Below are positions 9,871 through 55,923 of a stretch of 64,000 nt of DNA, piece by piece. Position 1 is the first letter of the stretch. Every line of letters begins with the position of its first letter. Both the position numbers and the translations under genes were made by a program. The notes under the pieces were generated by a model. The model ran no database searches. It was not told the origin of the DNA and saw nothing but the letters and a program-made list of their open reading frames with translations. Origin of the DNA: Paramoeba atlantica (taxonomy: Eukaryota; Protista; Discosea); contig CDRNVI010000011.1 of the NCBI GenBank assembly GCA_977017575.1, forward strand, positions 186,001-250,000, in the 5' to 3' direction.

Positions 9871-10562
9871 GAGCGACTAACGTCGTGTACGTTGTTGTGT
9901 CTTCAATACAAGTTAATGTGATGAGTTCTATTCGTATTCAGACGAGAGTCGCATTCGACGATCTCGCATTAATTTTGCGTAGGCTTCTACCAGCCTAACC
10001 GCCCCCATTCCATTCGGATGGCTTCCGATTAAGACGAAGAACGAAATTTCTACGAATTGGTTTACATACATGCATGTCTCCATGCTGCCAAGAGATCGAG
10101 AACTCTTTGATGTCCTCAAAAAAATAGGGTTTATCTGTTGAAGAGAAGAGGTCATCAGTCCACGCACTACCTCGAGACAAGGGAGGTAGATGTTGGGGTG
10201 TACCAGATACTAGATGAACACTACATACAATGTATGTATGTGTAGTCTATAATTTATATTTAAGCTAATATTCGTGTTTCCTACATAAACATACATTTAA
10301 TTTGCGTGTGCTTTCATGTGTTACGTCAAAGAACTGCTACCTACGTGTAAGAGTTACATTACTTTAGAAGTTCACCTAAGGGCTATGGGAGAACAGAAAC
10401 GTTATCATGTCTTTGTTTTGTGGGTGGACTTGGTATATTTGTCTGTCCTCTTTTTCTAAAATGCGTATTTGTACCTTTTGGTGTTTACCCAGATGATCTA
10501 TCTTATGAGCACAATTCTAGTTCTGCTGCAGGATCAATTGTAACATCCGTCATTTCGTGTGC

Positions 10563-12827
10563 ATGTTACATCGTAATGTAGTAGATCGTCTGCGCAAAGC
10601 ATCACTCAAACTGTTCTCAAGCCTTCCTGGAGATCCGAAAAATTCGCATTCACTTGTACACAGTGCAAATGAACCATCGGGAAGCAGCGACGAGCTTTCT
10701 TGCCATTCATCACATTTGCCTCGAATTGCGGGTGATTCTTCACTCGGATTATGGAAAGCAGCTTTAGACAAGAATTGGTACGGCGCCCTAAGAATTTACT
10801 CTAGCCTTCCGTTTCAAAAGCAAATCGACCGAAAAACTCTAACATTTATTTTGAATTCGTCCAAAAGGTCGTGGACACATGCTTGTCGCATCATTCAGCA
10901 TGTTCACAATGTTCTCCACGTTGAATATGAGGCAGAGAAATTAGAAATGATACTCGCGGAAATATATCGTGTGGATCAAGGGTGGTGGTGCAATCCCAAA
11001 TCTGTTGAAACAAGGTGTCAAACTATTAAACAAATTTTCAATACTATTATCAGACTGCGAAACGACGGGAAAACTCAACATTTAAAGGGAAATACAATTA
11101 AGCACGCGGTTACATCCCTTGCTGACTGGTGTGATGCACTGCAACTATTTCAGAATACGATTCTTACGGCAACTGATGTTGCCCCTAATCACTTCTTTCC
11201 AGCTGTAAGGTGGATTGAACACGCGCGAAACAGAGGATGTCAGAAGTCCGAGGGGCAAATTCAAGCTTTACATTCTTTACTAAACCAGTGTTGCGTCCGC
11301 AACAGATTGCTTCTACGCGGAGACAATGCTTGCAATCTCTACGAGCGACTTGTAAGATCCTACGCGCGCTACGGAAGCTGGGCAGAAATGCTTAATGTTA
11401 TTAGTAAAATGGATGTAGATTCGACTCCAAGCTGGCGAATGCTAGTGCCAACCGCTCCCACTTTTTTTGTTACGTGGGCTCTCTTAGTACGCCATCGACT
11501 CCTTGTAATGGCCCGCCGCGTCATGGAGATTTATACTAAGCTTTATCCTAATACAAGGTGGAGTTCAATTACGTCGGCACCAGATGTATCATTTGCTGCT
11601 CGAATGCTAATGCACACAACTGCACCTCTCTCCGCCTCCATTAGATTTGAACGTGAACCATGTTCTCACCGCATTATTTCACACCAGGAGAAGGCTTTGT
11701 ACCGCCGAGATAATACATGGATACATGTAAAAGATTTTTACAGGTATCATGTTGAGCGTTTCAAGATAGAATCGGAAGCCGCGCATTTACGAATGCATAT
11801 TTCTCTCAATACTAATTATATTTTTTCAGTCCTTACTAGGACGGCTCATCTTCAGTTTTCAGTATTTTTTGCCGCTCAACCTTTATTGCACGAAGATTGC
11901 TGGAGGCTTGCGTTATCAGCTTTTGTAAGAGGAACGCCGATGGAATCGACAAAATCTATTATAAGTGACACTACTGAATTTCTAGCTGAACAAGAAAAAT
12001 TTTCTGAACTTTGCCAACGATTAGCAGTGCTGATGACAAGATATTCCTCGCCTTTTCCTAAATCCATACAGAGAAACTTCTTCCTTTATTTAAGCAGAAA
12101 ATCGCCTCTCACTTCGTATGCAGTTGCTGCTGTATATGCTAGAGCCGCCTCTCTATCAGAAGCATGGGAAGATGCTCTCACATACTACTATATTTCCCTT
12201 AGCAGGCCTTTGCAGTTCGTTCGTGAGTCAGATTCCGCACAACGTGCAGTACTGCCCATTCATGTTCTAAACTCGTGTTTGATGCATGGACAATGGTCCA
12301 AGGCTTGCAAAGTTTATGGTGATACTATGCACTCGCTTTCAAAGCATGTTACCTTAGCCTCACCGGCCGCAGAATACATTTACACGAAAGAGACAAGTAC
12401 ATTAAACACTAAAATGATGTCCTCAAAATTAGGCAGTGGCATTACTCAAGAATTTGTGATTTTATTGCTGCGACGTAGAATACATATGCTTCACCTTGAG
12501 CGGTCCAGCTTGAACCAACCAAGTGAAACTGGACTTCCTGAAATAATTGTCACCCTGCTGCAAACTCACTCGAAAGTAAATGATCTAGCTAAGCAATTGC
12601 TAGAGGAATGCATAGAGCTTGAAAGAGATGAGTCCCATAGGCAGAAACTAAGCCAATGTTTGAGCATTTTCGGGATTATTGCTGAATATCGAACAAAGAA
12701 CCCCAAAGTCACCCAGTCTGTGAATGTTCACGGTACACCCAATGCCTTGGATGCGAAGCAACCCCCCAAGAGATACTCGAACACGGCACACTCTAGGAAT
12801 ATCCAAATACAGCTTACGCTTACGTGA
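10563..12827 (+). CDS. Hypothetical helical-repeat (PPR-like) protein, possibly mitochondrial
   Basis: 756-aa ORF with PPR-like segments (YERLVRSYARYGSWAEMLNVISKM; LNSCLMHGQWSKACKVY) and an Arg/Ser-rich N-terminus. Confidence 0.4.
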   Translation: MLHRNVVDRLRKASLKLFSSLPGDPKNSHSLVHSANEPSGSSDELSCHSSHLPRIAGDSSLGLWKAALDKNWYGALRIYSSLPFQKQIDRKTLTFILNSSKRSWTHACRIIQHVHNVLHVEYEAEKLEMILAEIYRVDQGWWCNPKSVETRCQTIKQIFNTIIRLRNDGKTQHLKGNTIKHAVTSLADWCDALQLFQNTILTATDVAPNHFFPAVRWIEHARNRGCQKSEGQIQALHSLLNQCCVRNRLLLRGDNACNLYERLVRSYARYGSWAEMLNVISKMDVDSTPSWRMLVPTAPTFFVTWALLVRHRLLVMARRVMEIYTKLYPNTRWSSITSAPDVSFAARMLMHTTAPLSASIRFEREPCSHRIISHQEKALYRRDNTWIHVKDFYRYHVERFKIESEAAHLRMHISLNTNYIFSVLTRTAHLQFSVFFAAQPLLHEDCWRLALSAFVRGTPMESTKSIISDTTEFLAEQEKFSELCQRLAVLMTRYSSPFPKSIQRNFFLYLSRKSPLTSYAVAAVYARAASLSEAWEDALTYYYISLSRPLQFVRESDSAQRAVLPIHVLNSCLMHGQWSKACKVYGDTMHSLSKHVTLASPAAEYIYTKETSTLNTKMMSSKLGSGITQEFVILLLRRRIHMLHLERSSLNQPSETGLPEIIVTLLQTHSKVNDLAKQLLEECIELERDESHRQKLSQCLSIFGIIAEYRTKNPKVTQSVNVHGTPNALDAKQPPKRYSNTAHSRNIQIQLTLT

Positions 12828-14669: not shown

Positions 14670-16943
14670 GTGACAACGTCAAATCTTTGGCGACTTGAAT
14701 ATTTCTTTGAAGGTTCTGACAGAGCTTTGCACATCATGTCATCTGAGACGCTGCGACATTGCCTTGATCTGGCGAGCACAGGCAATATGGATAGGTATGC
14801 AGCGACTCATATGCTACATCATCATTGGCGTGAGCGTTCCTCTTTTACAGTAGAATTATGGGGTCCCAATGGGAGTGGCAAGAATGCGCAGCTCGAAGTG
14901 TGGTGCGACCAGATATCGAAATACGCGCATTCTTATGAGGGCAATATTAACAAGCGATACTGGGGCCCGAAACGGACTTACTTCTTGAAGTTTGACAACA
15001 GTGACTACCCCCGAAACATCAGCGTCCGTGATTACACACATAGATTTTTTCAGCATCTATTGAAAGTGCTCGGTTCAACTTTCTTTTCTGACTCGTCCTC
15101 CTCGGAGACGAATATTTGGCGTGATAGTTCAGACTCTGAAAGCACAACTCCTTCTTCCGTACTTTGTTCATCTAGTGAAGTAGAAACCATATCACCTGAA
15201 CACATGGAAGGTCACGAATCGTCAGAATTTTTAAACGAGTCCTCTTTACGCATTAAGTTGCGCAAGCGCAGAAAACAAGTTTGCCGAAAGAAAATAAATT
15301 TTGGCTTGAATGCATTTAAGGAGCCCGACCTTTCAGATGACGATTTTGGGGGACTGAGCGATTGTTCTACTAATTCGCGGTCACAAAGTTCCTGTCACAG
15401 TGATGATCTTTTTGAAAAAGGTCATACGCATACGTTGCGCACTAACTCTGTTGTACGTCGGCTTGTTGCAATCCTCGAAAGAATTTTCATCAACGGAGAG
15501 ATGATAGTGATTTGTCTTAGTCGTATGGACTTGTGTCTATCCGCTTCTCAAAAGATTTTGTACGGGATTCTTACACATATGGCAGATGCCTCCTCTTCAG
15601 TTTTGCTGATAACAACCGTTCTTCACACGAAGTCGCTTTCGTTTGAGAAGCGTATTTACAGCCGGTATAATCCTTTTCATGTAGCAATGTTTTCGAAGGT
15701 TGACGTTGCCAATTTATCTAGTGCTTTAAATCTTCTTCTTCCTCAGCAGAAAATACCATCAAATTCAACTTGTATTGCAGCTTCTCAAACCGCAGAAAGC
15801 CTAACAGATTCCTTACAGAAAGCTATCGATTCGGGTCAAGGATTTTCTCTACTTCAGCATTGCGCTGATAATGCCCGTTCTTTTTCGGAGATTTGTTCAG
15901 AACAACCTTTATTAGCAGGAAATAATAGGAGAAACAAATCAAAAAACTCGAAGTTTCTTGTAGTACGAAGAGTAGAATCCAATGAAAAAGAATTTTCCGC
16001 GTCACGCACGACCCACACTGTTTCTAGTTCTTTGGTTGCCCTTCTGGATCCAGGTTTTCGCTCTTTATCTTCCATTTCCCTCCCGAGATTGCAGGAATCG
16101 GTGATTGGTGGCGCACCTGTTCAGTTGCTTTGCCATCTTTCATCTTGGATAAATCGAGTACGCAAAGCTGTTTATGACTGCATTATATTAGCTGCTGCTG
16201 CTGTCCTTTCATGGGAGCAAGCAGAGGCTCACTACCACAAACACACTGTTGCTCCTGCATCATCTTCAAAGGATACCCTGCCAAGTTTCACCCATGCGTC
16301 ACGGAGCGCACGTGTCCCAATGCAAGGCGCGTTGAAGTCGCCTCCTCTCCCATTTAGTTCCATGTGCTTCACCTCTTGCTCTGTGTTGCGAATTATTGCA
16401 AGTCGCGACGGGGGTATGTTCCCTATGTGTGCCCCTTCCTTTTTAGACAGTATCGTCACCGAGGGCAAAGGAGATGAAAGGGGTGAGTATCATTCATCGG
16501 ATTCTGTTTTGTTTAGTGCGACATGGGACGAATGGATTCATGCAGCCCTCAGAGATGTAGAAAATGGGGAAAAGCATACACTACACTCCTCACATGGTCA
16601 TTCTTCTCAGTTCAATATGTGGTATGAATCTCTAGGACGCCTGACGACTGAGCTCGGACTTCTTTCACATTTCACAGGTACCCTTTTATTTTTAACTCTT
16701 CCACCTACCCAGACAACCAGCTTAGTAGTCACTAGGCTCTCTAATATAGTGAGTCATGTTGAAGCGCAGCACGAGGCGTGGTGTGCTTCGAGATACAGGC
16801 CTCTAGAAGATGTGAGTGAGAATGATCGTACTCAACTATTTACCCGGCGCCTTGTATCGGGAGTTTTAGCGGATGTAAAAGAGGTACAAAAGCGATTTGT
16901 TATGCACTCAGAGAGTACTATTAATCGAATGCAGCAACTCTAG
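14670..16943 (+). CDS. ORC4: Divergent origin recognition complex subunit 4-like AAA+ protein
   Basis: Walker A-like GPNGSGK, then SQKILYGIL..VLLIT..SFEKRIYSRY matching the ORC4 QTLLYNLFD..LEKRVKSRF region. Long Ser-rich insertion. Track start is GTG; first ATG at 14736. Confidence 0.65.
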   Translation: MTTSNLWRLEYFFEGSDRALHIMSSETLRHCLDLASTGNMDRYAATHMLHHHWRERSSFTVELWGPNGSGKNAQLEVWCDQISKYAHSYEGNINKRYWGPKRTYFLKFDNSDYPRNISVRDYTHRFFQHLLKVLGSTFFSDSSSSETNIWRDSSDSESTTPSSVLCSSSEVETISPEHMEGHESSEFLNESSLRIKLRKRRKQVCRKKINFGLNAFKEPDLSDDDFGGLSDCSTNSRSQSSCHSDDLFEKGHTHTLRTNSVVRRLVAILERIFINGEMIVICLSRMDLCLSASQKILYGILTHMADASSSVLLITTVLHTKSLSFEKRIYSRYNPFHVAMFSKVDVANLSSALNLLLPQQKIPSNSTCIAASQTAESLTDSLQKAIDSGQGFSLLQHCADNARSFSEICSEQPLLAGNNRRNKSKNSKFLVVRRVESNEKEFSASRTTHTVSSSLVALLDPGFRSLSSISLPRLQESVIGGAPVQLLCHLSSWINRVRKAVYDCIILAAAAVLSWEQAEAHYHKHTVAPASSSKDTLPSFTHASRSARVPMQGALKSPPLPFSSMCFTSCSVLRIIASRDGGMFPMCAPSFLDSIVTEGKGDERGEYHSSDSVLFSATWDEWIHAALRDVENGEKHTLHSSHGHSSQFNMWYESLGRLTTELGLLSHFTGTLLFLTLPPTQTTSLVVTRLSNIVSHVEAQHEAWCASRYRPLEDVSENDRTQLFTRRLVSGVLADVKEVQKRFVMHSESTINRMQQL

Positions 16944-28129: not shown

Positions 28130-31100
28130 ATGGAGGTGCTGTTATACATGTACGATTTATCTCGTGGCACCGCCGCGTTGCTTAGCCAGTCCCTGATTGG
28201 GCATCACTTGGATGCGATCTGGCACACATCCATTGTTCTTGGGGGTATTGAATGCTATTTTGATGCGCACGAGGGGATTGTGCAAGGCCCTGCTGGAAAG
28301 ACTCGATTCGGGAAACCGCTTCGAATCCAAAGTTTGGGCATTACTACTCGATCTGTAGACGAATGGAACGTTTACGTACGGTGTCACACAATGTCACGAT
28401 TTCACAAAACAAAATATCACCTCCTGGAGAATAATTGTAACCACTACACTGAGGAAGCTACTTCTTATCTTGGCGTACAAAGTCTTCCAGCATGTGTCCG
28501 TGAAATGATGAATATTGTTCTTTCCACGCCATGGGTCCGAGCCTTTTTCGACTCGGCCAGTGCTTCGAACTCGTCTACAACCTCTGCAATAGGTAACATT
28601 AAAGTTGCTGAAGATACACATGACTGCAATAGTGTATTGAAAGAGGGAATTTCACCAATAGTATACGACGCAAACATGTTCATATCCAAAGTCAAGCAAA
28701 TTTTACAAGCGTCACCTGGGTCGCATGGCTTCATAATTGCAATGTCAGTTTGGCGGTCACTGGAAGGTTTTTTGGAGGAATTTCAAGATATAAATTACGG
28801 TGTTCTGCAAATTGGTAAGGAGTGGACGCACGTACAGAACGAGATTGTCGAAGCTTTGCTTTTGGTTGGCTTTACGAATGGACCAAATAACGAAAATACC
28901 TCTTGTTCACTTCGGTTTACGAAACTTGAAGGTACGCTGTCAATCCCAATGCTTATTTCCGCAGTCTCGGAAGAAATAATTCAAGAAGAACTAGAAGAAG
29001 CCTTGATGATTTCTGTCAGTGGCACCGTAAACGTGGACGCCAAAAATGATGTATCAGAAAGAACTTTACCAGAAAGCACTTTTGACATGGCTGTCGGAGG
29101 TCCAGTGAAAGCACGTTTGAAATTGAATGAAGCCCTGATATCAAAATCTTCGATAAACATCTTAAAACTTTCTATGAGCAGTGGAATCGATACTATGAAA
29201 GAGCTCATGGATTGGATTCCTCCTTCAGTTATTGCCAAGTCGCACGTCAAATTATTGCTTTCCACCCAGAGGACCTTAAAATGTTCCACTCATTCACAGG
29301 AAAGAGTTCTTGCTTCGAGTCGCACTCTCTTGTGTCACGATTGTCGTGGTGGCTACTTAGAATCCGACCGTTATCCTCAGGGTAAGGACATCACCTTATC
29401 TACAGAAAATCCTTTTCCCGGCTACTTATTTCGTCATTGGCAATGCATTGATACGTTTGTCTATTTTTCCCATCATCGCGTTACAATTCCCCCCGCTGTG
29501 TGGATCGATGTGGCTCACAGTAATTCAGTTCCTGTCTTGGGAACTTTCATAACCGAGTGGTCAGAAGGGGTTGATGAGTGCTCAAATTTCTTGAATAGCG
29601 AAGCAAACGTTGCTCATGTTGCAAGTCAATTGGCTAATATTGCGATGTATTACAACTTCGACGGATGGCTGGTGAACATAGAAAATCCTGTTTCTCCTAG
29701 AGGTGTAGAGCATCTCCTGCATTTTCTTTCCCTATTAACCGCAACTATGCATAGTTTGCATCCCGCAAGTCATGTTCTTTGGTACGACAGTGTCACAGTG
29801 CAAGGCAAATTACAATGGCAATCCTGTCTCAGTTCACTGAATAGTTCATTCTTTGAGCTTTGTGATGGCATTTTTACTGATTATCACTGGACGGAAGCTC
29901 ACTTGCAACACAGTATAAAAATGGCGGGAGAACTATCCCATAAAGTTTACGTGGGTATTGACATATTTTGTCGCAACTCCCCTCGTCAGAAGCCCTCAAT
30001 TGAACTCGTCGCAGAGTCTTATCGCGCGGTGACCGATACTAGATCCCTTTCGTCGGCACTTTTTGCGCCCGGTTGGACGTGGGAAACGAGTTCGGGGATG
30101 CAAATCAACTGTGATGGAAGTTCACAGGGAACCGGGTTTATTTCTCGCGACAATTTATTGTGGTCCACTTTGTTTCCTACACATGTAACACCTTGTATCA
30201 CAAGTCTTCCGTTTTCCACAAATTTCAACGCAGGATTCGGTATCCAAACTTGTCGTTTCGGCAGTCCTGTAGCTGAGGCACTCCCATGGCAGCATCTTTC
30301 ACAGCAAGAGTTGTGCCCTATAGGTGAAGACAAAAAAAATTCGGAAAAGGGGGCACCATACATAGAGTCACAACCCTGCATGAATCGAGCTTTTCATGGG
30401 GGGTGCAGTTGGGAGGGTAAATTGCACTATAACGATATCAGTTGTACTTTTTCAGAATCGGATTCCCCAAGGTTAGCAAAGACAACAATGTTTGGATGTT
30501 GCGTAAATTTGAAAAACTGTAAATGTAACAGTAGTGAAAGTGGTAATCTTATTGTTGAGGTCGTTTTTCATAAACCAACAACTTTAGCGTCTAATTGCGC
30601 TCTTTCGTTGGTTGTGCGTACTGATTGCGCAACACTGGTACAAGCAGACGAAACGCGTATTCCGGATGAAAGTTGCGTAACCGAATTGCTTTTTCCTTTC
30701 TCAGAGGACGCGAGATTTCATAATCACAAGGATTTACGGGAGTGTGAAGTTCATCTTCCGAGTACGATTGCGTCTAAATCCGTCTCTTGTGCTGACTATT
30801 TGTCATCGGAGTGGGATGTTTTGAACTTTTCTGTACCCATCAGTCACATAGTATCTGAGGGACATACTGTTCTAGACGGTATTAGCCTCGTGCTTATGGA
30901 ATCGTTCCCCCTTTCTACAAAGAATTCGCATGATTTCATAGAAATAGAAAAGGCCGCAGTAACCTTGGGTAGGCTTGCCCTTTGGATAGATGAGACAGGT
31001 GGCGCTAAAGAAGGCATATCATCTCCTAGTTATGAAACGACGGGTTTTTCGAAATCTCTGGTTAGGCACAATTCTTTGCGAAAGCCCGTTCTGAATTTAA

Positions 31101-31447
31101 GTTTGTTAAATTTCGTAGCACCTAACTTTCAAAATCTCTCTCACATCAATTTTATTCCCGGTATACGATACTATGAGGTGTGGATCCTAACACTAGAAGA
31201 TTTGAACGATTTTGTCTTTTCTTGTGATGAACACATTTTACTTGCAGATCTCGTTGTAAAGATAGGTGACAAGGAACACACTTTTCACTATGCAGGAAGG
31301 GCGTATCATACGTATTTTTCTTTAGCAAGTTGCATGTACCCGAGCATTCGAAACAAGCTTGATAACTGTAATCAAGTCATGTCTTTGCTCATTCCTTTTT
31401 CATATAACGATATCGAGCAAACACCTTGGTATTTTGCACAAGTATAG
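28130..31447 (+). CDS. Fusion protein: PPPDE/DeSI-type isopeptidase + linker with UIM-like motif + GH85 endo-beta-N-acetylglucosaminidase (ENGase)
   Basis: N-terminal LYMYDLSRG..IWHTSIV..YF..YHLLENNCNH (His/Cys dyad). EEELEEALMIS at about 28976-29017. LLCHD..GGY, FVYFSHHRVTIPP, GTFITEW, FDGWLVNIEN, WYDSVT..G.L.WQ and DGIFTDY.W are GH85 motifs. One uninterrupted 1105-aa ORF. Confidence 0.85.
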   Translation: MEVLLYMYDLSRGTAALLSQSLIGHHLDAIWHTSIVLGGIECYFDAHEGIVQGPAGKTRFGKPLRIQSLGITTRSVDEWNVYVRCHTMSRFHKTKYHLLENNCNHYTEEATSYLGVQSLPACVREMMNIVLSTPWVRAFFDSASASNSSTTSAIGNIKVAEDTHDCNSVLKEGISPIVYDANMFISKVKQILQASPGSHGFIIAMSVWRSLEGFLEEFQDINYGVLQIGKEWTHVQNEIVEALLLVGFTNGPNNENTSCSLRFTKLEGTLSIPMLISAVSEEIIQEELEEALMISVSGTVNVDAKNDVSERTLPESTFDMAVGGPVKARLKLNEALISKSSINILKLSMSSGIDTMKELMDWIPPSVIAKSHVKLLLSTQRTLKCSTHSQERVLASSRTLLCHDCRGGYLESDRYPQGKDITLSTENPFPGYLFRHWQCIDTFVYFSHHRVTIPPAVWIDVAHSNSVPVLGTFITEWSEGVDECSNFLNSEANVAHVASQLANIAMYYNFDGWLVNIENPVSPRGVEHLLHFLSLLTATMHSLHPASHVLWYDSVTVQGKLQWQSCLSSLNSSFFELCDGIFTDYHWTEAHLQHSIKMAGELSHKVYVGIDIFCRNSPRQKPSIELVAESYRAVTDTRSLSSALFAPGWTWETSSGMQINCDGSSQGTGFISRDNLLWSTLFPTHVTPCITSLPFSTNFNAGFGIQTCRFGSPVAEALPWQHLSQQELCPIGEDKKNSEKGAPYIESQPCMNRAFHGGCSWEGKLHYNDISCTFSESDSPRLAKTTMFGCCVNLKNCKCNSSESGNLIVEVVFHKPTTLASNCALSLVVRTDCATLVQADETRIPDESCVTELLFPFSEDARFHNHKDLRECEVHLPSTIASKSVSCADYLSSEWDVLNFSVPISHIVSEGHTVLDGISLVLMESFPLSTKNSHDFIEIEKAAVTLGRLALWIDETGGAKEGISSPSYETTGFSKSLVRHNSLRKPVLNLSLLNFVAPNFQNLSHINFIPGIRYYEVWILTLEDLNDFVFSCDEHILLADLVVKIGDKEHTFHYAGRAYHTYFSLASCMYPSIRNKLDNCNQVMSLLIPFSYNDIEQTPWYFAQV

Positions 31448-32872: not shown

Positions 32873-33140
32873 CCACTATGAAGGGAGTTAGTGTTAAGAT
32901 CAAGAATGTCGAAGTGTTGCAAAGTCTTCTTAGGATTTGATTAGGAAAATGTATTGTTTTTCAAATGGAAGAGAACACTAAACACGATACCATTATAAAT
33001 TGTTGACTAGCATTATTGGCTAGGACATTGGAATATTCCTTTTCAATGAGCATCGAGGTTCATAAGCAGATATTATTTTATCCTTTCGGTCACGGGGGCC
33101 AATGATAATCTATATTTTATCTTATTCTTACTATTTGCAT

Positions 33141-34517
33141 ATGACTGACTTCAAGCAAACTGACAGAAACAGTGAGAGTGTTCGCACAGCAGCTTTCTAC
33201 TACGGAGCAGGTGACTTTCCTTTATCGCACGTCATATACGATATCAAGCACAAAATTGTGTCACAAGGTGTACGACTAAACAACCAACAACAGCGAATTC
33301 TTTCTCCACAGGATCGATATGTCGTTCTTGTTTCGCACAAAGGCAAAGCTTCTTGTCTTGAAATACGGGGAAATGAAGAAGAGGTTTTGCCTATCGCTTC
33401 TCAGTCGAAATTAGAGCTGACAAATGCTGAAAAAATATCATCCGATTTTCCTCACACGTTTGATAATTCTGCATGCTCCGAAGACTCAAGCTTTTGTGAT
33501 CTTGTGGATGTGCATACCTCGCACAGAAAAGTGGATATCCCGGGACCTATGGGTCATCTTTCCACTTTTCAATGGTTTATCAAAGAGTGTGTGGGTGATG
33601 CGTCATCGTTAACAGCACTTTACTTTAGTTCTCATGCCAAAGGTTTGCATCTTTTTATGGATGAGGGTGTACATGATGTGAGTCAGGCTCTGAGCATCCG
33701 TGATATTGCCGATACTCTGCGCGCACTTGGTCCTCTACCCCACCTAAATGCTATTTACTTTGATGCATGTTGCTTAGCTCATATTGAAGTACCAATGCTA
33801 TTCAACGGTATCTGCCCTTACAATGTTGCTTTTGAAACTTTCTGTCCATGGGAGGGGCTTATCTCATACGATAATATGGTACATGCATGTGCACAGGATA
33901 TTGCGCGACAACACATAGAGCGATATGAATCAAGAGAAATGCTTCCTGATGAAGACCCTTCCGATGTCTCAGTGCTTCGCACCGAATGGGATCCTTCAAT
34001 TTTCAAAGCTCTTCTTCAATTACTTGTTTCAAAGGATTTGTTTCAAGATATAAGGGCCAACCCTGAATATCCATATCATCAGAATCTTGACGATGACGAT
34101 CCACCCTTGTTTATACCTTTTTTTGAGGATAACTCAAAGAAGTTCTCCTTGGGAAACGAAATTGGTACTCAATTGGTTCTGTCACCTCCTTACGACTACG
34201 AAATAAGAGAATGTACAGAAAGTAATACCATACTACCCGACTCCTCCGGGCCGAGACCTCGGGGAGATAATCCAAACGTTAAATATATTTGCGTCCCTCC
34301 TCACGCGACTTATGATATTATATCTGCGTTATCAGACATACCTGCGCAAGACACACGCTATAACGACGCACAAATGTTAAAAAAACGTTTTGCAGAAAAA
34401 ATTATTTTTTATTTTCGTACATCACGTCATCACAAACTTCGAACCAATGGTGTGGCGATACGTCATAGCATCATGCACGACAAACTGTGTGCGGCTGGTG
34501 ATACCGTTTTCAAGTAA
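33141..34517 (+). CDS. Clostripain-family (peptidase C11) cysteine peptidase-like protein
   Basis: ALYFSSHAKG (His) ..MDE..LSIRDIADTL..AIYFDACCLAHIEV (Cys) ..VAFETFCPWEG follows the C11 HG..FDAC.M...EV..ASE...P..G pattern. Confidence 0.65.
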   Translation: MTDFKQTDRNSESVRTAAFYYGAGDFPLSHVIYDIKHKIVSQGVRLNNQQQRILSPQDRYVVLVSHKGKASCLEIRGNEEEVLPIASQSKLELTNAEKISSDFPHTFDNSACSEDSSFCDLVDVHTSHRKVDIPGPMGHLSTFQWFIKECVGDASSLTALYFSSHAKGLHLFMDEGVHDVSQALSIRDIADTLRALGPLPHLNAIYFDACCLAHIEVPMLFNGICPYNVAFETFCPWEGLISYDNMVHACAQDIARQHIERYESREMLPDEDPSDVSVLRTEWDPSIFKALLQLLVSKDLFQDIRANPEYPYHQNLDDDDPPLFIPFFEDNSKKFSLGNEIGTQLVLSPPYDYEIRECTESNTILPDSSGPRPRGDNPNVKYICVPPHATYDIISALSDIPAQDTRYNDAQMLKKRFAEKIIFYFRTSRHHKLRTNGVAIRHSIMHDKLCAAGDTVFK

Positions 34518-49335: not shown

Positions 49336-50877
<1,542 letters not shown>

Positions 50878-51401
50878 AAATCTTTATTTTCGCTTTGTTC
50901 CACACTATATTGGAGAAGTCGTCCGTGCACCACTAAGAAAAGATATTAAGTAATGATACCACCAAGTAATGATCTTTATTGACTTTGGTTCATCGCATTG
51001 ACTTTCCCGCCTGCATGAATGGAAAGTTGAGGTTTCTTCTTTTTTCCGACCTTCATTGGTATTAATGAGAGATAGTACACTGTGGACTGTAGTATTGGTA
51101 AAAGACGAATAATAGCAGTACAAAACGTTATAATTCCACAATTGTCAGAGTTTTGCATTTTCAGCTGTATTAGTTCCGCGTTACGCATACTGGTACCCCT
51201 GTATACATGTGCTGGGCTTGACATTGTTCAGAGTTTCTTTCTTCAGACGCCACTACAAATATAGCACGAGTTTTTAGCATATAGATTTTTTTATATAGCT
51301 TTTAGTAAAAGCTATGAAGTCGGTAAAATTTACCGACTGTTTCGAAACCTTATACTACCATCACACAAACAGGCTTATTTTATTATTTTCTATATCTGTT
51401 T

Positions 51402-52439
51402 ATGCCCCGCGAAGCAGCGCTTTCTCTTTCCCAGCAAGAAGTTGCACTCTCCCAAAATTCTCAGCCATCCAAAGGATTATCCCAACGTACGATGCCTTTA
51501 GCTAAAGCAGATGTCAATGCGATTCCAGTTCTCAGTCAAGCAATCAAGGCTTGTCCTTCCCTTTTTCTTCAAAAAGAAAAGATTCTAACCCAATCCGTAG
51601 AACAGTCACAGCCGTACCTCTCTGCCTCCCCACAGGCCGACAAGCGACGACACGCTGATCCCCAGTACGCCGCAGAGTATATGAAAGATATTATGTCAAG
51701 TCTAAGACACGCCGAGGAACAACTTTCGCGCGACCCCTACTTGAGTCATCAACCGGAGTTGAGCGAAAAAATGCGAACCATTCTTGTTGACTGGCTTGTC
51801 GAGGTACACCTGAAGTTCAAGTGTCGGCCCGAGACACTCTTCCTTGCCGTCGATATTGTTGACCGATACCTCTCCGTCGCACGCACCACTCGATCTACAC
51901 TTCAGCTTGTGGGTGTTACCGCGATACTGCTCGCGGCTAAATATGAGGAAATATGGCCACCTGAAATTAAAGACTGTGTGTACATTAGCGCGAACACGTA
52001 CTCCCGAGAAGATATTCTCACTATGGAACGACTTATTTGTGGAGCGCTTCACTTCCGACTGACAACTCCGAATGTAATGCACTTCACATGCCGTCTGTTA
52101 GACGTGATGGACGCCGACACTTCATTGACACATGCCACCTTTTACTACTCGGAGATATCCCTACTGAGCTACGCGATGTACGGATATTTGCCGAGTCTAG
52201 TGGCTGCCGCCTGTGTGTATCTCGCATGTCGTACGCGGGGCCACACGGAGCCATGGACTCCTCTGATGCAACACTACTCGGGATACACTCTACCCGATGT
52301 CTTTAGTGTCGCTCAGCAGTTATTGGAGTACGCCCACGTGTTGCTGAGCAGCAAGTACACCGCGGTGAAACGGAAATATGATACGGATAAATACGCAAAT
52401 GCGGCATCTTGTTCTCTTCCACAGAGGGAAGATTTTTAG
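51402..52439 (+). CDS. Cyclin, copy 2 (chimera: N-terminus of copy 3, core and C-terminus of copy 1)
   Basis: Same cyclin box; N-terminus MPREAALS.. shared with copy 3 and C-terminus ..LPQREDF shared with copy 1. Confidence 0.92.
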   Translation: MPREAALSLSQQEVALSQNSQPSKGLSQRTMPLAKADVNAIPVLSQAIKACPSLFLQKEKILTQSVEQSQPYLSASPQADKRRHADPQYAAEYMKDIMSSLRHAEEQLSRDPYLSHQPELSEKMRTILVDWLVEVHLKFKCRPETLFLAVDIVDRYLSVARTTRSTLQLVGVTAILLAAKYEEIWPPEIKDCVYISANTYSREDILTMERLICGALHFRLTTPNVMHFTCRLLDVMDADTSLTHATFYYSEISLLSYAMYGYLPSLVAAACVYLACRTRGHTEPWTPLMQHYSGYTLPDVFSVAQQLLEYAHVLLSSKYTAVKRKYDTDKYANAASCSLPQREDF

Positions 52440-52816: not shown

Positions 52817-54358
<1,542 letters not shown>

Positions 54359-54882
54359 AAATCTTTATTTTCGCTTTGTTCCACACTATATTGGAGAAGT
54401 CGTCCGTGCACCACTAAGAAAAGATATTAAGTAATGATACCACCAAGTAATGATCTTTATTGACTTTGGTTCATCGCATTGACTTTCCCGCCTGCATGAA
54501 TGGAAAGTTGAGGTTTCTTCTTTTTTCCGACCTTCATTGGTATTAATGAGAGATAGTACACTGTGGACTGTAGTATTGGTAAAAGACGAATAATAGCAGT
54601 ACAAAACGTTATAATTCCACAATTGTCAGAGTTTTGCATTTTCAGCTGTATTAGTTCCGCGTTACGCATACTGGTACCCCTGTATACATGTGCTGGGCTT
54701 GACATTGTTCAGAGTTTCTTTCTTCAGACGCCACTACAAATATAGCACGAGTTTTTAGCATATAGATTTTTTTATATAGCTTTTAGTAAAAGCTATGAAG
54801 TCGGTAAAATTTACCGACTGTTTCGAAACCTTATACTACCATCACACAAACAGGCTTATTTTATTATTTTCTATATCTGTTT

Positions 54883-55923
54883 ATGCCCCGCGAAGCAGCG
54901 CTTTCTCTTTCCCAGCAAGAAGTTGCACTCTCCCAAAATTCTCAGCCATCCAAAGGATTATCCCAACGTACGATGCCTTTAGCTAAAGCAGATGTCAATG
55001 CGATTCCAGTTCTCAGTCAAGCAATCAAGGCTTGTCCTTCCCTTTTTCTTCAAAAAGAAAAGATTCTAACCCAATCCGTAGAACAGTCACAGCCGTACCT
55101 CTCTGCCTCCCCACAGGCCGACAAGCGACGACACGCTGATCCCCAGTACGCCGCAGAGTATATGAAAGATATTATGTTAAGTCTAAGACACGCCGAGGAA
55201 CAACTTTCGCGCGACCCCTACTTGAGTCATCAACCGGAGTTGAGCGAAAAAATGCGAACCATTCTTGTTGACTGGCTTGTCGAGGTACACCTGAAGTTCA
55301 AGTGTCGGCCCGAGACACTCTTCCTTGCCGTCGATATTGTTGACCGATACCTCTCCGTCGCACGCACCACTCGATCTACACTTCAGCTTGTGGGTGTTAC
55401 CGCGATACTGCTCGCGGCTAAATATGAGGAAATATGGCCACCTGAAATTAAAGACTGTGTGTACATTAGCGCCAACACGTACTCCCGAGAAGATATTCTC
55501 ACTATGGAACGACTTATTTGTGGAGCGCTTCACTTCCGACTGACAACTCCGAATGTAATGCACTTCACAAGCCGTCTGTTAGACGTGATGGACGCCGACA
55601 CTTCATTGACACATGCCACCTTTTACTACTCGGAGATATCCCTACTGAGCTACGCGATGTACGGATATCTGCCGAGTCTAGTGGCTGCCGCCTGTGTGTA
55701 TCTCGCATGTCGTACGCGGGGCCACACGGAGCCATGGACTCCTCTGATGCAACACTACTCGGGATACACTCTACCCGATGTCTTTAGTGTCGCCCAGCAG
55801 TTATTGGAGTACGCCCACGTGTTGCTGAGCAGCAAGTACACCGCGGTGAAACGGAAATATGCCTCATCAAAATGCGGTGAGGTTTCCGATCAGCCGCTCC
55901 CGGAGCTAAGCGATTCACTTTAG
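54883..55923 (+). CDS. Cyclin, copy 3 (unique C-terminus)
   Basis: Cyclin box with two amino-acid changes (S>L, C>S) and a distinct tail ASSKCGEVSDQPLPELSDSL. Confidence 0.92.
   Translation: MPREAALSLSQQEVALSQNSQPSKGLSQRTMPLAKADVNAIPVLSQAIKACPSLFLQKEKILTQSVEQSQPYLSASPQADKRRHADPQYAAEYMKDIMLSLRHAEEQLSRDPYLSHQPELSEKMRTILVDWLVEVHLKFKCRPETLFLAVDIVDRYLSVARTTRSTLQLVGVTAILLAAKYEEIWPPEIKDCVYISANTYSREDILTMERLICGALHFRLTTPNVMHFTSRLLDVMDADTSLTHATFYYSEISLLSYAMYGYLPSLVAAACVYLACRTRGHTEPWTPLMQHYSGYTLPDVFSVAQQLLEYAHVLLSSKYTAVKRKYASSKCGEVSDQPLPELSDSL

Follow-up and report, generated by a model that had tools for sequence, protein, structure and literature searches.

Trypanosoma brucei was reported to lack PNGase, and its endo-beta-N-acetylglucosaminidase (TbENGase, Tb927.9.3400) was proposed as the deglycosylase for endoplasmic reticulum-associated degradation (ERAD) in this parasite; in the same study ubiquitin was undetectable on an MG132-stalled substrate, and N-terminal domains of the enzyme were not mentioned (PMC6233060). 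In animals, PNGase (NGLY1) joins a p97-binding PUB domain to a transglutaminase core and a mannose-binding PAW domain (PMC9102325), and the cytosolic ENGases of animals and plants consist of a glycoside hydrolase family 85 (GH85) domain and PF25529. DeSI-1 and DeSI-2 (PPPDE2 and PPPDE1; PDB 2wp7, 3ebq) are stand-alone PPPDE proteins of about 170 amino acids, the physiological substrate of which is disputed (PMC9012467). Here we analysed a stretch of 64,000 nucleotides (the window) from an assembly deposited as Paramoeba atlantica (GCA_977017575.1, contig CDRNVI010000011.1, positions 186,001 to 250,000, forward strand), in which one open reading frame (ORF) joins an N-terminal PPPDE domain to a GH85 domain. 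By domain order and tree position this ORF is an ordinary orthologue of the ENGase of kinetoplastids and diplonemids, which is already in the databases, and the architecture is not new.

A PPPDE-GH85 reading frame and its euglenozoan relatives

The ORF spans positions 28130-31447 on the plus strand and encodes 1105 amino acids in 1105 codons with no internal stop. Because of this length and the strength of the matches to both catalytic domains, it is far beyond chance. For comparison we used an alignment of 20 proteins, the window's own and 19 high-scoring matches of an exhaustive HMMER scan, to which all statements on conservation refer. The start methionine matches the N-termini of all relatives and is invariant. 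The following features were delimited in the ORF:

28130..28552, plus strand, residues 1-141: PPPDE / Peptidase_C97 (DeSI-type) domain, from Pfam and phmmer
28553..28654, plus strand, residues 142-175: Ser/Thr-rich linker, with an AlphaFold2 confidence (pLDDT) below 50, aligned to low-complexity linkers of the relatives
28655..28924, plus strand, residues about 176-265: PUB-like remnant, from alignment columns, including EALLLVGF at residues 241-248 (28850-28873)
28982..29020, plus strand, residues 285-297: UIM-like helix QEELEEALMISVS, from the motif and a predicted helix
29021..29179, plus strand, residues 298-350: linker at the position of the relatives' DM9 domain, from an alignment gap
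29180..30244, plus strand, residues 351-705: GH85 ENGase catalytic region (Pfam match at residues 425-705), from Pfam and phmmer
30245..31447, plus strand, residues 706-1105: C-terminal region and stop codon, a tail common to the family
30564..30568, plus strand: T5 homopolymer, which is T6 in another public assembly and breaks the ORF there

The Pfam PPPDE family (PF05903, Peptidase_C97) matched residues 2-141 with an E-value of 6.5e-27 and 94.7 bits (curated cut-off 29.2), and phmmer comparison with the DeSI structures 3ebq and 2wp7 (E 5e-21) placed His32 and Cys103 on the DeSI residues His38 and Cys108. Tyr96 lies seven residues before Cys103, in the place of DeSI Tyr101, and completes the His/Tyr/Cys triad described for these proteins (PMC9012467). 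All three residues are conserved in no less than 90% of the aligned proteins. The GH85 family (PF03644) matched residues 425-705 with an E-value of 3.4e-83 and 280.1 bits (curated cut-off 22.2), while residues 351-424 matched an N-terminal extension common to eukaryotic ENGases that carry GH85 as their sole domain. In the comparison with Endo-A (3fha; phmmer E 2.3e-24), Asn516 and Glu518, both invariant in the alignment, correspond to N171 and E173, and Tyr552 to the tyrosine of the WYDS motif. The first-pass annotation, made by a model from the letters alone, had claimed the single ORF, the PPPDE dyad (His32 at 28223, Cys103 at 28436) and the GH85 Asn516-Ile-Glu518 motif (29675-29683), and all of these positions proved exact. 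Since the residues align with the solved DeSI and Endo-A structures, both catalytic centres look intact. The window protein is likely an active cytosolic ENGase.

The tail was without a Pfam match, including to PF25529. Tails of 250-440 amino acids are found in all family members, with few conserved columns (W895, G947). AlphaFold2 modelled residues 700-1105 mostly as beta strands with a pLDDT of 44, and the model is therefore not usable. The animal and plant cytosolic ENGases are homologous in GH85, with 36-49% identity over the aligned part, but they are without PPPDE, PUB, UIM and DM9, and the window tail lacks their PF25529. The DeSI proteins in turn share the fold family and the His/Tyr/Cys centre with the N-terminal domain of the window protein.

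The first-pass annotation had not recognised the domain combination, which raised the possibility of a novel, lineage-specific architecture. Our literature search is compatible with novelty insofar as it returned no paper combining PPPDE and endo-beta-N-acetylglucosaminidase. The protein databases, however, make this explanation scarcely credible. A word-based search gave two proteins with PPPDE, PUB and GH85, and among the best 150 matches of the exhaustive HMMER scan there were at least about 17 representatives (clusters at 50% identity) of 1000-1430 amino acids with two matched stretches. Numerous named proteins from trypanosomatids, prokinetoplastids and diplonemids likewise have their domains in this order. 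Papus ankaliazontas, Diplonema japonicum, T. vivax and L. donovani were the first sources of named members. With the T. vivax protein as seed, a second word search extended the list to T. rangeli, T. conorhini, T. melophagium, T. cruzi, T. cruzi marinkellei and T. congolense, the last with a gene model lacking the N-terminus, as well as Porcisia, L. martiniquensis, L. mexicana and Leptomonas. The proteins added in this way have the same Pfam string, with DM9 in addition in the Leishmaniinae. The fusion was hence found in seven Trypanosoma species, Leishmania, Porcisia, Leptomonas, the prokinetoplastid Papus and Diplonema, that is, it is common in kinetoplastids and diplonemids. In public records its members go by the names ENGase, "PUB domain" (T. 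melophagium) or "peptidase PPPDE 5" (L. donovani). The first-pass annotation had named an architecture already common in kinetoplastids or other protists as grounds for refuting its reading, and this is the case: many proteins have the order PPPDE-PUB-GH85, often with DM9. In the 20-protein alignment, PPPDE and GH85 are both present in 18 proteins and PUB in 14, and DM9 lies between PUB and GH85 in nine. The Papus and Diplonema proteins each derive from a single assembled transcript, and the genomic relatives, including three further members, are single ORFs within same-strand gene arrays.

In GH85 trees the fusion proteins clustered, with two label changes against 15-17 in shuffles, and constraining them to monophyly gave a better likelihood and was not rejected (approximately unbiased test, p 0.80). 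As the GH85 domains of the fusions cluster, the data fit a single, ancient fusion event in an ancestor that kinetoplastids and diplonemids share. The window protein has PPPDE and then GH85 collinear on one chain, and its GH85 domain falls inside the fusion cluster as sister to that of Papus (support 97). The protein of Papus ankaliazontas (PhM-4, Prokinetoplastina; EP00760_P005294, our P0034, annotated as K01227 ENGase) is the nearest relative: identity is 49-50% in both PPPDE and GH85, the domain order is the same, the UIM-like helix after PUB is shared, and PUB is likewise missed by Pfam. What sets it apart is that it retains a DM9 repeat (E 3.4e-18) and has some 130 additional amino acids in the linker, where the window protein has a gap. 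The trypanosomatid ENGases (T. vivax KAG8344658.1; L. donovani CAJ1992225.1, the "peptidase PPPDE 5", and AYU82220.1) likewise begin with PPPDE, have GH85 in their C-terminal half and conserve both centres. Unlike the window protein, they show a PUB that Pfam recognises, preceded by an acidic UIM-like helix, and those of Leishmaniinae carry DM9 as well.

The middle region and a possible role in ERAD

Across the family the order of elements is PPPDE, UIM-like helix, PUB, UIM-like helix, a variable DM9 lectin domain, GH85 and the C-terminal tail. The family PUB profile had its best match in the PUB of PNGase (2hpj, E 1.7e-10), with UBXD1 and HOIP ranking behind it, and DM9 proteins were described as mannose or high-mannose lectins (PMC5712788, PMC4932603). 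We therefore suggest that the ancestral euglenozoan ENGase shared the logic of NGLY1, with a PPPDE domain in addition. The most likely action of the GH85 domain is to cut the chitobiose core of N-glycans, either free or attached to glycoproteins, that arrive in the cytosol by retro-translocation, and this cleavage would replace that of the PNGase reported to be missing in T. brucei (PMC6233060). In the ancestral N-terminal module, PUB would dock to p97/VCP, UIM and DM9 would read ubiquitylated and mannose-bearing substrates, and the Cys-His centre of PPPDE would act on the same substrate by taking off an acyl or ubiquitin-like modification. The likeness to NGLY1 is one of functional analogy and not of membership: the animal enzyme combines a p97-binding PUB, a deglycosylase and a mannose module as well, but its catalytic domain is an amidase of transglutaminase fold and not a GH85 glycosidase, its mannose module is PAW instead of DM9, and it has no peptidase domain. 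The window protein is a deep-branching kinetoplastid's orthologue of this multi-domain cytosolic ENGase. We consider a role in ERAD deglycosylation probable, where the function as a PNGase substitute is suggested by what is published on T. brucei and by the domain context.

The window copy, however, has only part of this module. No significant Pfam match was obtained for residues 142-424, and the first UIM-like acidic helix, which precedes PUB in the trypanosomatid proteins, is missing. In the PUB-like region, which the first-pass annotation had described as possible and degenerate, EALLLVGF corresponds to the L...GF of the family, and L243 and G247 occupy columns with a conservation of 90% or more in the PUB of the relatives. 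Further on, the annotation had reported a UIM-like EEELEEALMIS; the stretch reads QEELEEALMIS (residues 285-295), yet the core motif holds, as it fits hydrophobic-x-x-Ala-x-x-x-Ser with preceding acidic residues. The stretch lies inside a long helix predicted by AlphaFold2. It aligned with Papus in a BLASTP segment (E 0.007), and roughly half of the family has an A-x-x-x-S helix at the same place after PUB. A motif this short should arise by chance about 0.2 times in a protein of this size (an estimate). DM9 gave no Pfam match in the window protein, which has one long gap where nine relatives (Papus, Diplonema, Leishmania and others) carry this domain. By these alignments the window copy is a reduced version of the family enzyme, without DM9 and without the first UIM-like helix, with a PUB remnant and with one UIM-like helix kept next to both catalytic centres.

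Several observations weigh against a role of the window protein in ERAD as outlined above, the first of them concerning PUB. Pfam PUB (PF09409) gave no match to the window protein at E-values up to 1, and hhalign against the family PUB profile reached a probability of 2.2% for the window sequence alone and 9.7% together with Papus (E 0.0033, 64 columns), which is weak. In the PUB of PNGase, residues of the NP...KYR...N..F stretch contact the tail of p97; with 2hpj as reference, a lone tyrosine of this stretch remains in the window protein, plus the later L...GF. The AlphaFold2 model of the linker that the first-pass annotation had called for (residues 142-400) had a pLDDT of 57, and while its order of secondary structure is compatible with PUB, the input alignment contained PUB-bearing relatives, which biases the model towards this fold. 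Foldseek with this model listed PNGase PUB among the top rows, at non-significant scores (2hpl, probability 0.35, TM-score 0.43, E 0.33). Because PUB appears to have decayed in the window copy, binding of p97 by this region, and recruitment through it, are doubtful here. Second, the Pfam UIM families (PF02809, PF23625) gave no match to the window protein when run on excised 31-residue segments, and one relative reached E 0.087. Third, we found no experiment on any member of the fusion family, and among the papers searched Tb927.9.3400 was cited by PMC6233060 alone. The same architecture for TbENGase itself is presumed from its relatives, and a single mRNA for the window ORF from the frame and the transcripts of the relatives. 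Finally, human PPPDE1 and PPPDE2 were reported to have weak deubiquitinase and deSUMOylase but strong S-depalmitoylase (thioesterase) activity in vitro, measured on artificial probes (PMC9012467).

The last point leads to an alternative in which the PPPDE domain is an S-depalmitoylase or another thioesterase, and the fusion either strips retro-translocated membrane proteins of their glycans as well as their acyl groups or combines two unrelated activities. The His/Tyr/Cys triad of the human enzymes is also that of the window protein. On the other hand, the thioesterase data were obtained with artificial probes alone, and in the relatives PPPDE adjoins PUB and UIM-like elements of the ubiquitin/p97 system. 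From this context we favour a ubiquitin-like substrate for the fusion family and regard the thioesterase explanation as unlikely. The coupling of deubiquitination to deglycosylation proposed in the first-pass annotation gains indirect support from the relatives, with their Pfam-positive, PNGase-like PUB and DM9, and from the T. brucei study (PMC6233060), whereas the window copy has a PUB remnant and a UIM-like stretch without a profile match; the disputed PPPDE activity counts against it.

A housekeeping ENGase outside ERAD, acting in the catabolism of free oligosaccharides, in which the N-terminal domain of this lineage plays a regulatory part or is inactive, would also account for the degenerate PUB and the missing DM9 of the window copy, and the animal and plant ENGases indeed function without such modules. 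We judge this to be rather improbable. The PPPDE catalytic triad is intact and conserved across the family, and the fusion was apparently retained throughout the kinetoplastid-diplonemid family. Between the window and a second haplotype or strain, the ORF differs at 16 positions, nine of them synonymous and seven non-synonymous, with no stop.

Returning to the ERAD deglycosylase as the probable function, we put forward a tentative and more specific model, which we hold with less than even confidence. The euglenozoan ENGase might be an all-in-one finishing enzyme of ERAD, with PUB as its dock on p97/VCP, UIM and DM9 as readers of ubiquitin and mannose and an isopeptidase of its own; in the prokinetoplastid lineage of the window the p97 dock would have decayed, leaving recruitment to the UIM-like helix alone. 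If true, this would explain why ubiquitin went undetected on stalled ERAD substrates of T. brucei. A survey of the VCP interactome and cofactors of Leishmania reported three PUB proteins (PMC7403338), and judging from chromosome size the fusion ENGase is apparently none of them. As a further orthologue, the window locus itself is of modest interest. The family, by contrast, is under-described, as the papers searched treat the trypanosome ENGase solely as a glycosidase (PMC6233060). In parasites without PNGase, a deglycosylase equipped with a peptidase domain, a PUB like that of PNGase and a mannose-binding lectin provides a direct, testable handle on how ERAD finishes.

In other protists we observed GH85 ENGase fused to an FBA domain in two proteins (P0031, 1510 amino acids; P0116 of Diphylleia rotans, 986 amino acids, which also carries a concanavalin-like domain). 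FBA is the domain with which the Fbs F-box proteins, which recognise ERAD glycoproteins, bind sugar. Here an ENGase seems to have been joined independently to a glycan-reading ERAD module.

Continuity of the reading frame and neighbouring genes

In another public assembly the locus is annotated as two overlapping genes of 814 and 302 amino acids. Alignment of its contig (ENA, L006) to the window traced this split to a single additional T at 30564-30568 (T6, L006:4025-4030), after which the frame continues as Val-Val-Phe-Ser-stop. Two genes or two mRNAs, whether through a concealed frameshift, through a stop or through a spliced-leader site inside the ORF, are nevertheless very improbable. Read contigs of two runs, record 2 of X1 and record 6 of X3 (the latter at depth 88), crossed the homopolymer without an indel, as T5; X3 represents the haplotype or strain compared above. 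The same public assembly also splits the adjoining ORF of 471 amino acids, into 244 and 213, and such splits are the pattern of error-prone long-read contigs. Moreover, the break in the T run lies after GH85, and therefore it does not separate PPPDE from GH85. The long C-terminal tail is present in all relatives, and the Papus and Diplonema proteins are encoded on single transcripts. Our analysis thus mends a split gene model of a public assembly.

Polypyrimidine tracts were tried as a proxy for internal trans-splice sites. Of the window's 43 tracts, 18 fall within ORFs, and this test therefore has no discriminating power; the tract inside the fusion ORF, at 29713-29733, is within GH85. Among the sequencing runs, which all consist of contigs, none is listed as RNA, and the run that was guessed to be RNA gave a lone contig of 173 bases at 30935-31107. 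In a further run (X4), short contigs diverge into unrelated sequence at 29503, 29832, 31250 and 31505, inside or just after the ORF. As spliced leaders these loose ends were rejected, the one before 29503 being 178 bases and too long for a leader, and they may be chimeric or repeat joins rather than splice sites.

All non-nested ORFs of at least 150 amino acids in the window are on the plus strand, as in a kinetoplastid polycistron, and the neighbours of the fusion ORF are housekeeping genes (Omp85/Sam50-like, RpiB, RNA 3'-phosphate cyclase-like and ribosomal protein L5). Synteny with one relative (P0002) was considered and dropped, as the downstream genes of 241 amino acids are unrelated. The adjoining 471-residue ORF (33102-34517) has a weak match to Peptidase_C11, the clostripain family, below the curated cut-off (E 4.4e-4). 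Elsewhere in the window, two ORFs of 756 and 757 amino acids (10557-12827 and 14670-16943) are without a Pfam match and are possible paralogues. Furthermore, a two-gene unit encoding a pyridine-nucleotide disulphide oxidoreductase (507 amino acids) and a cyclin (345/346 amino acids) is duplicated in tandem at 49354-52439 and 52835-55923.

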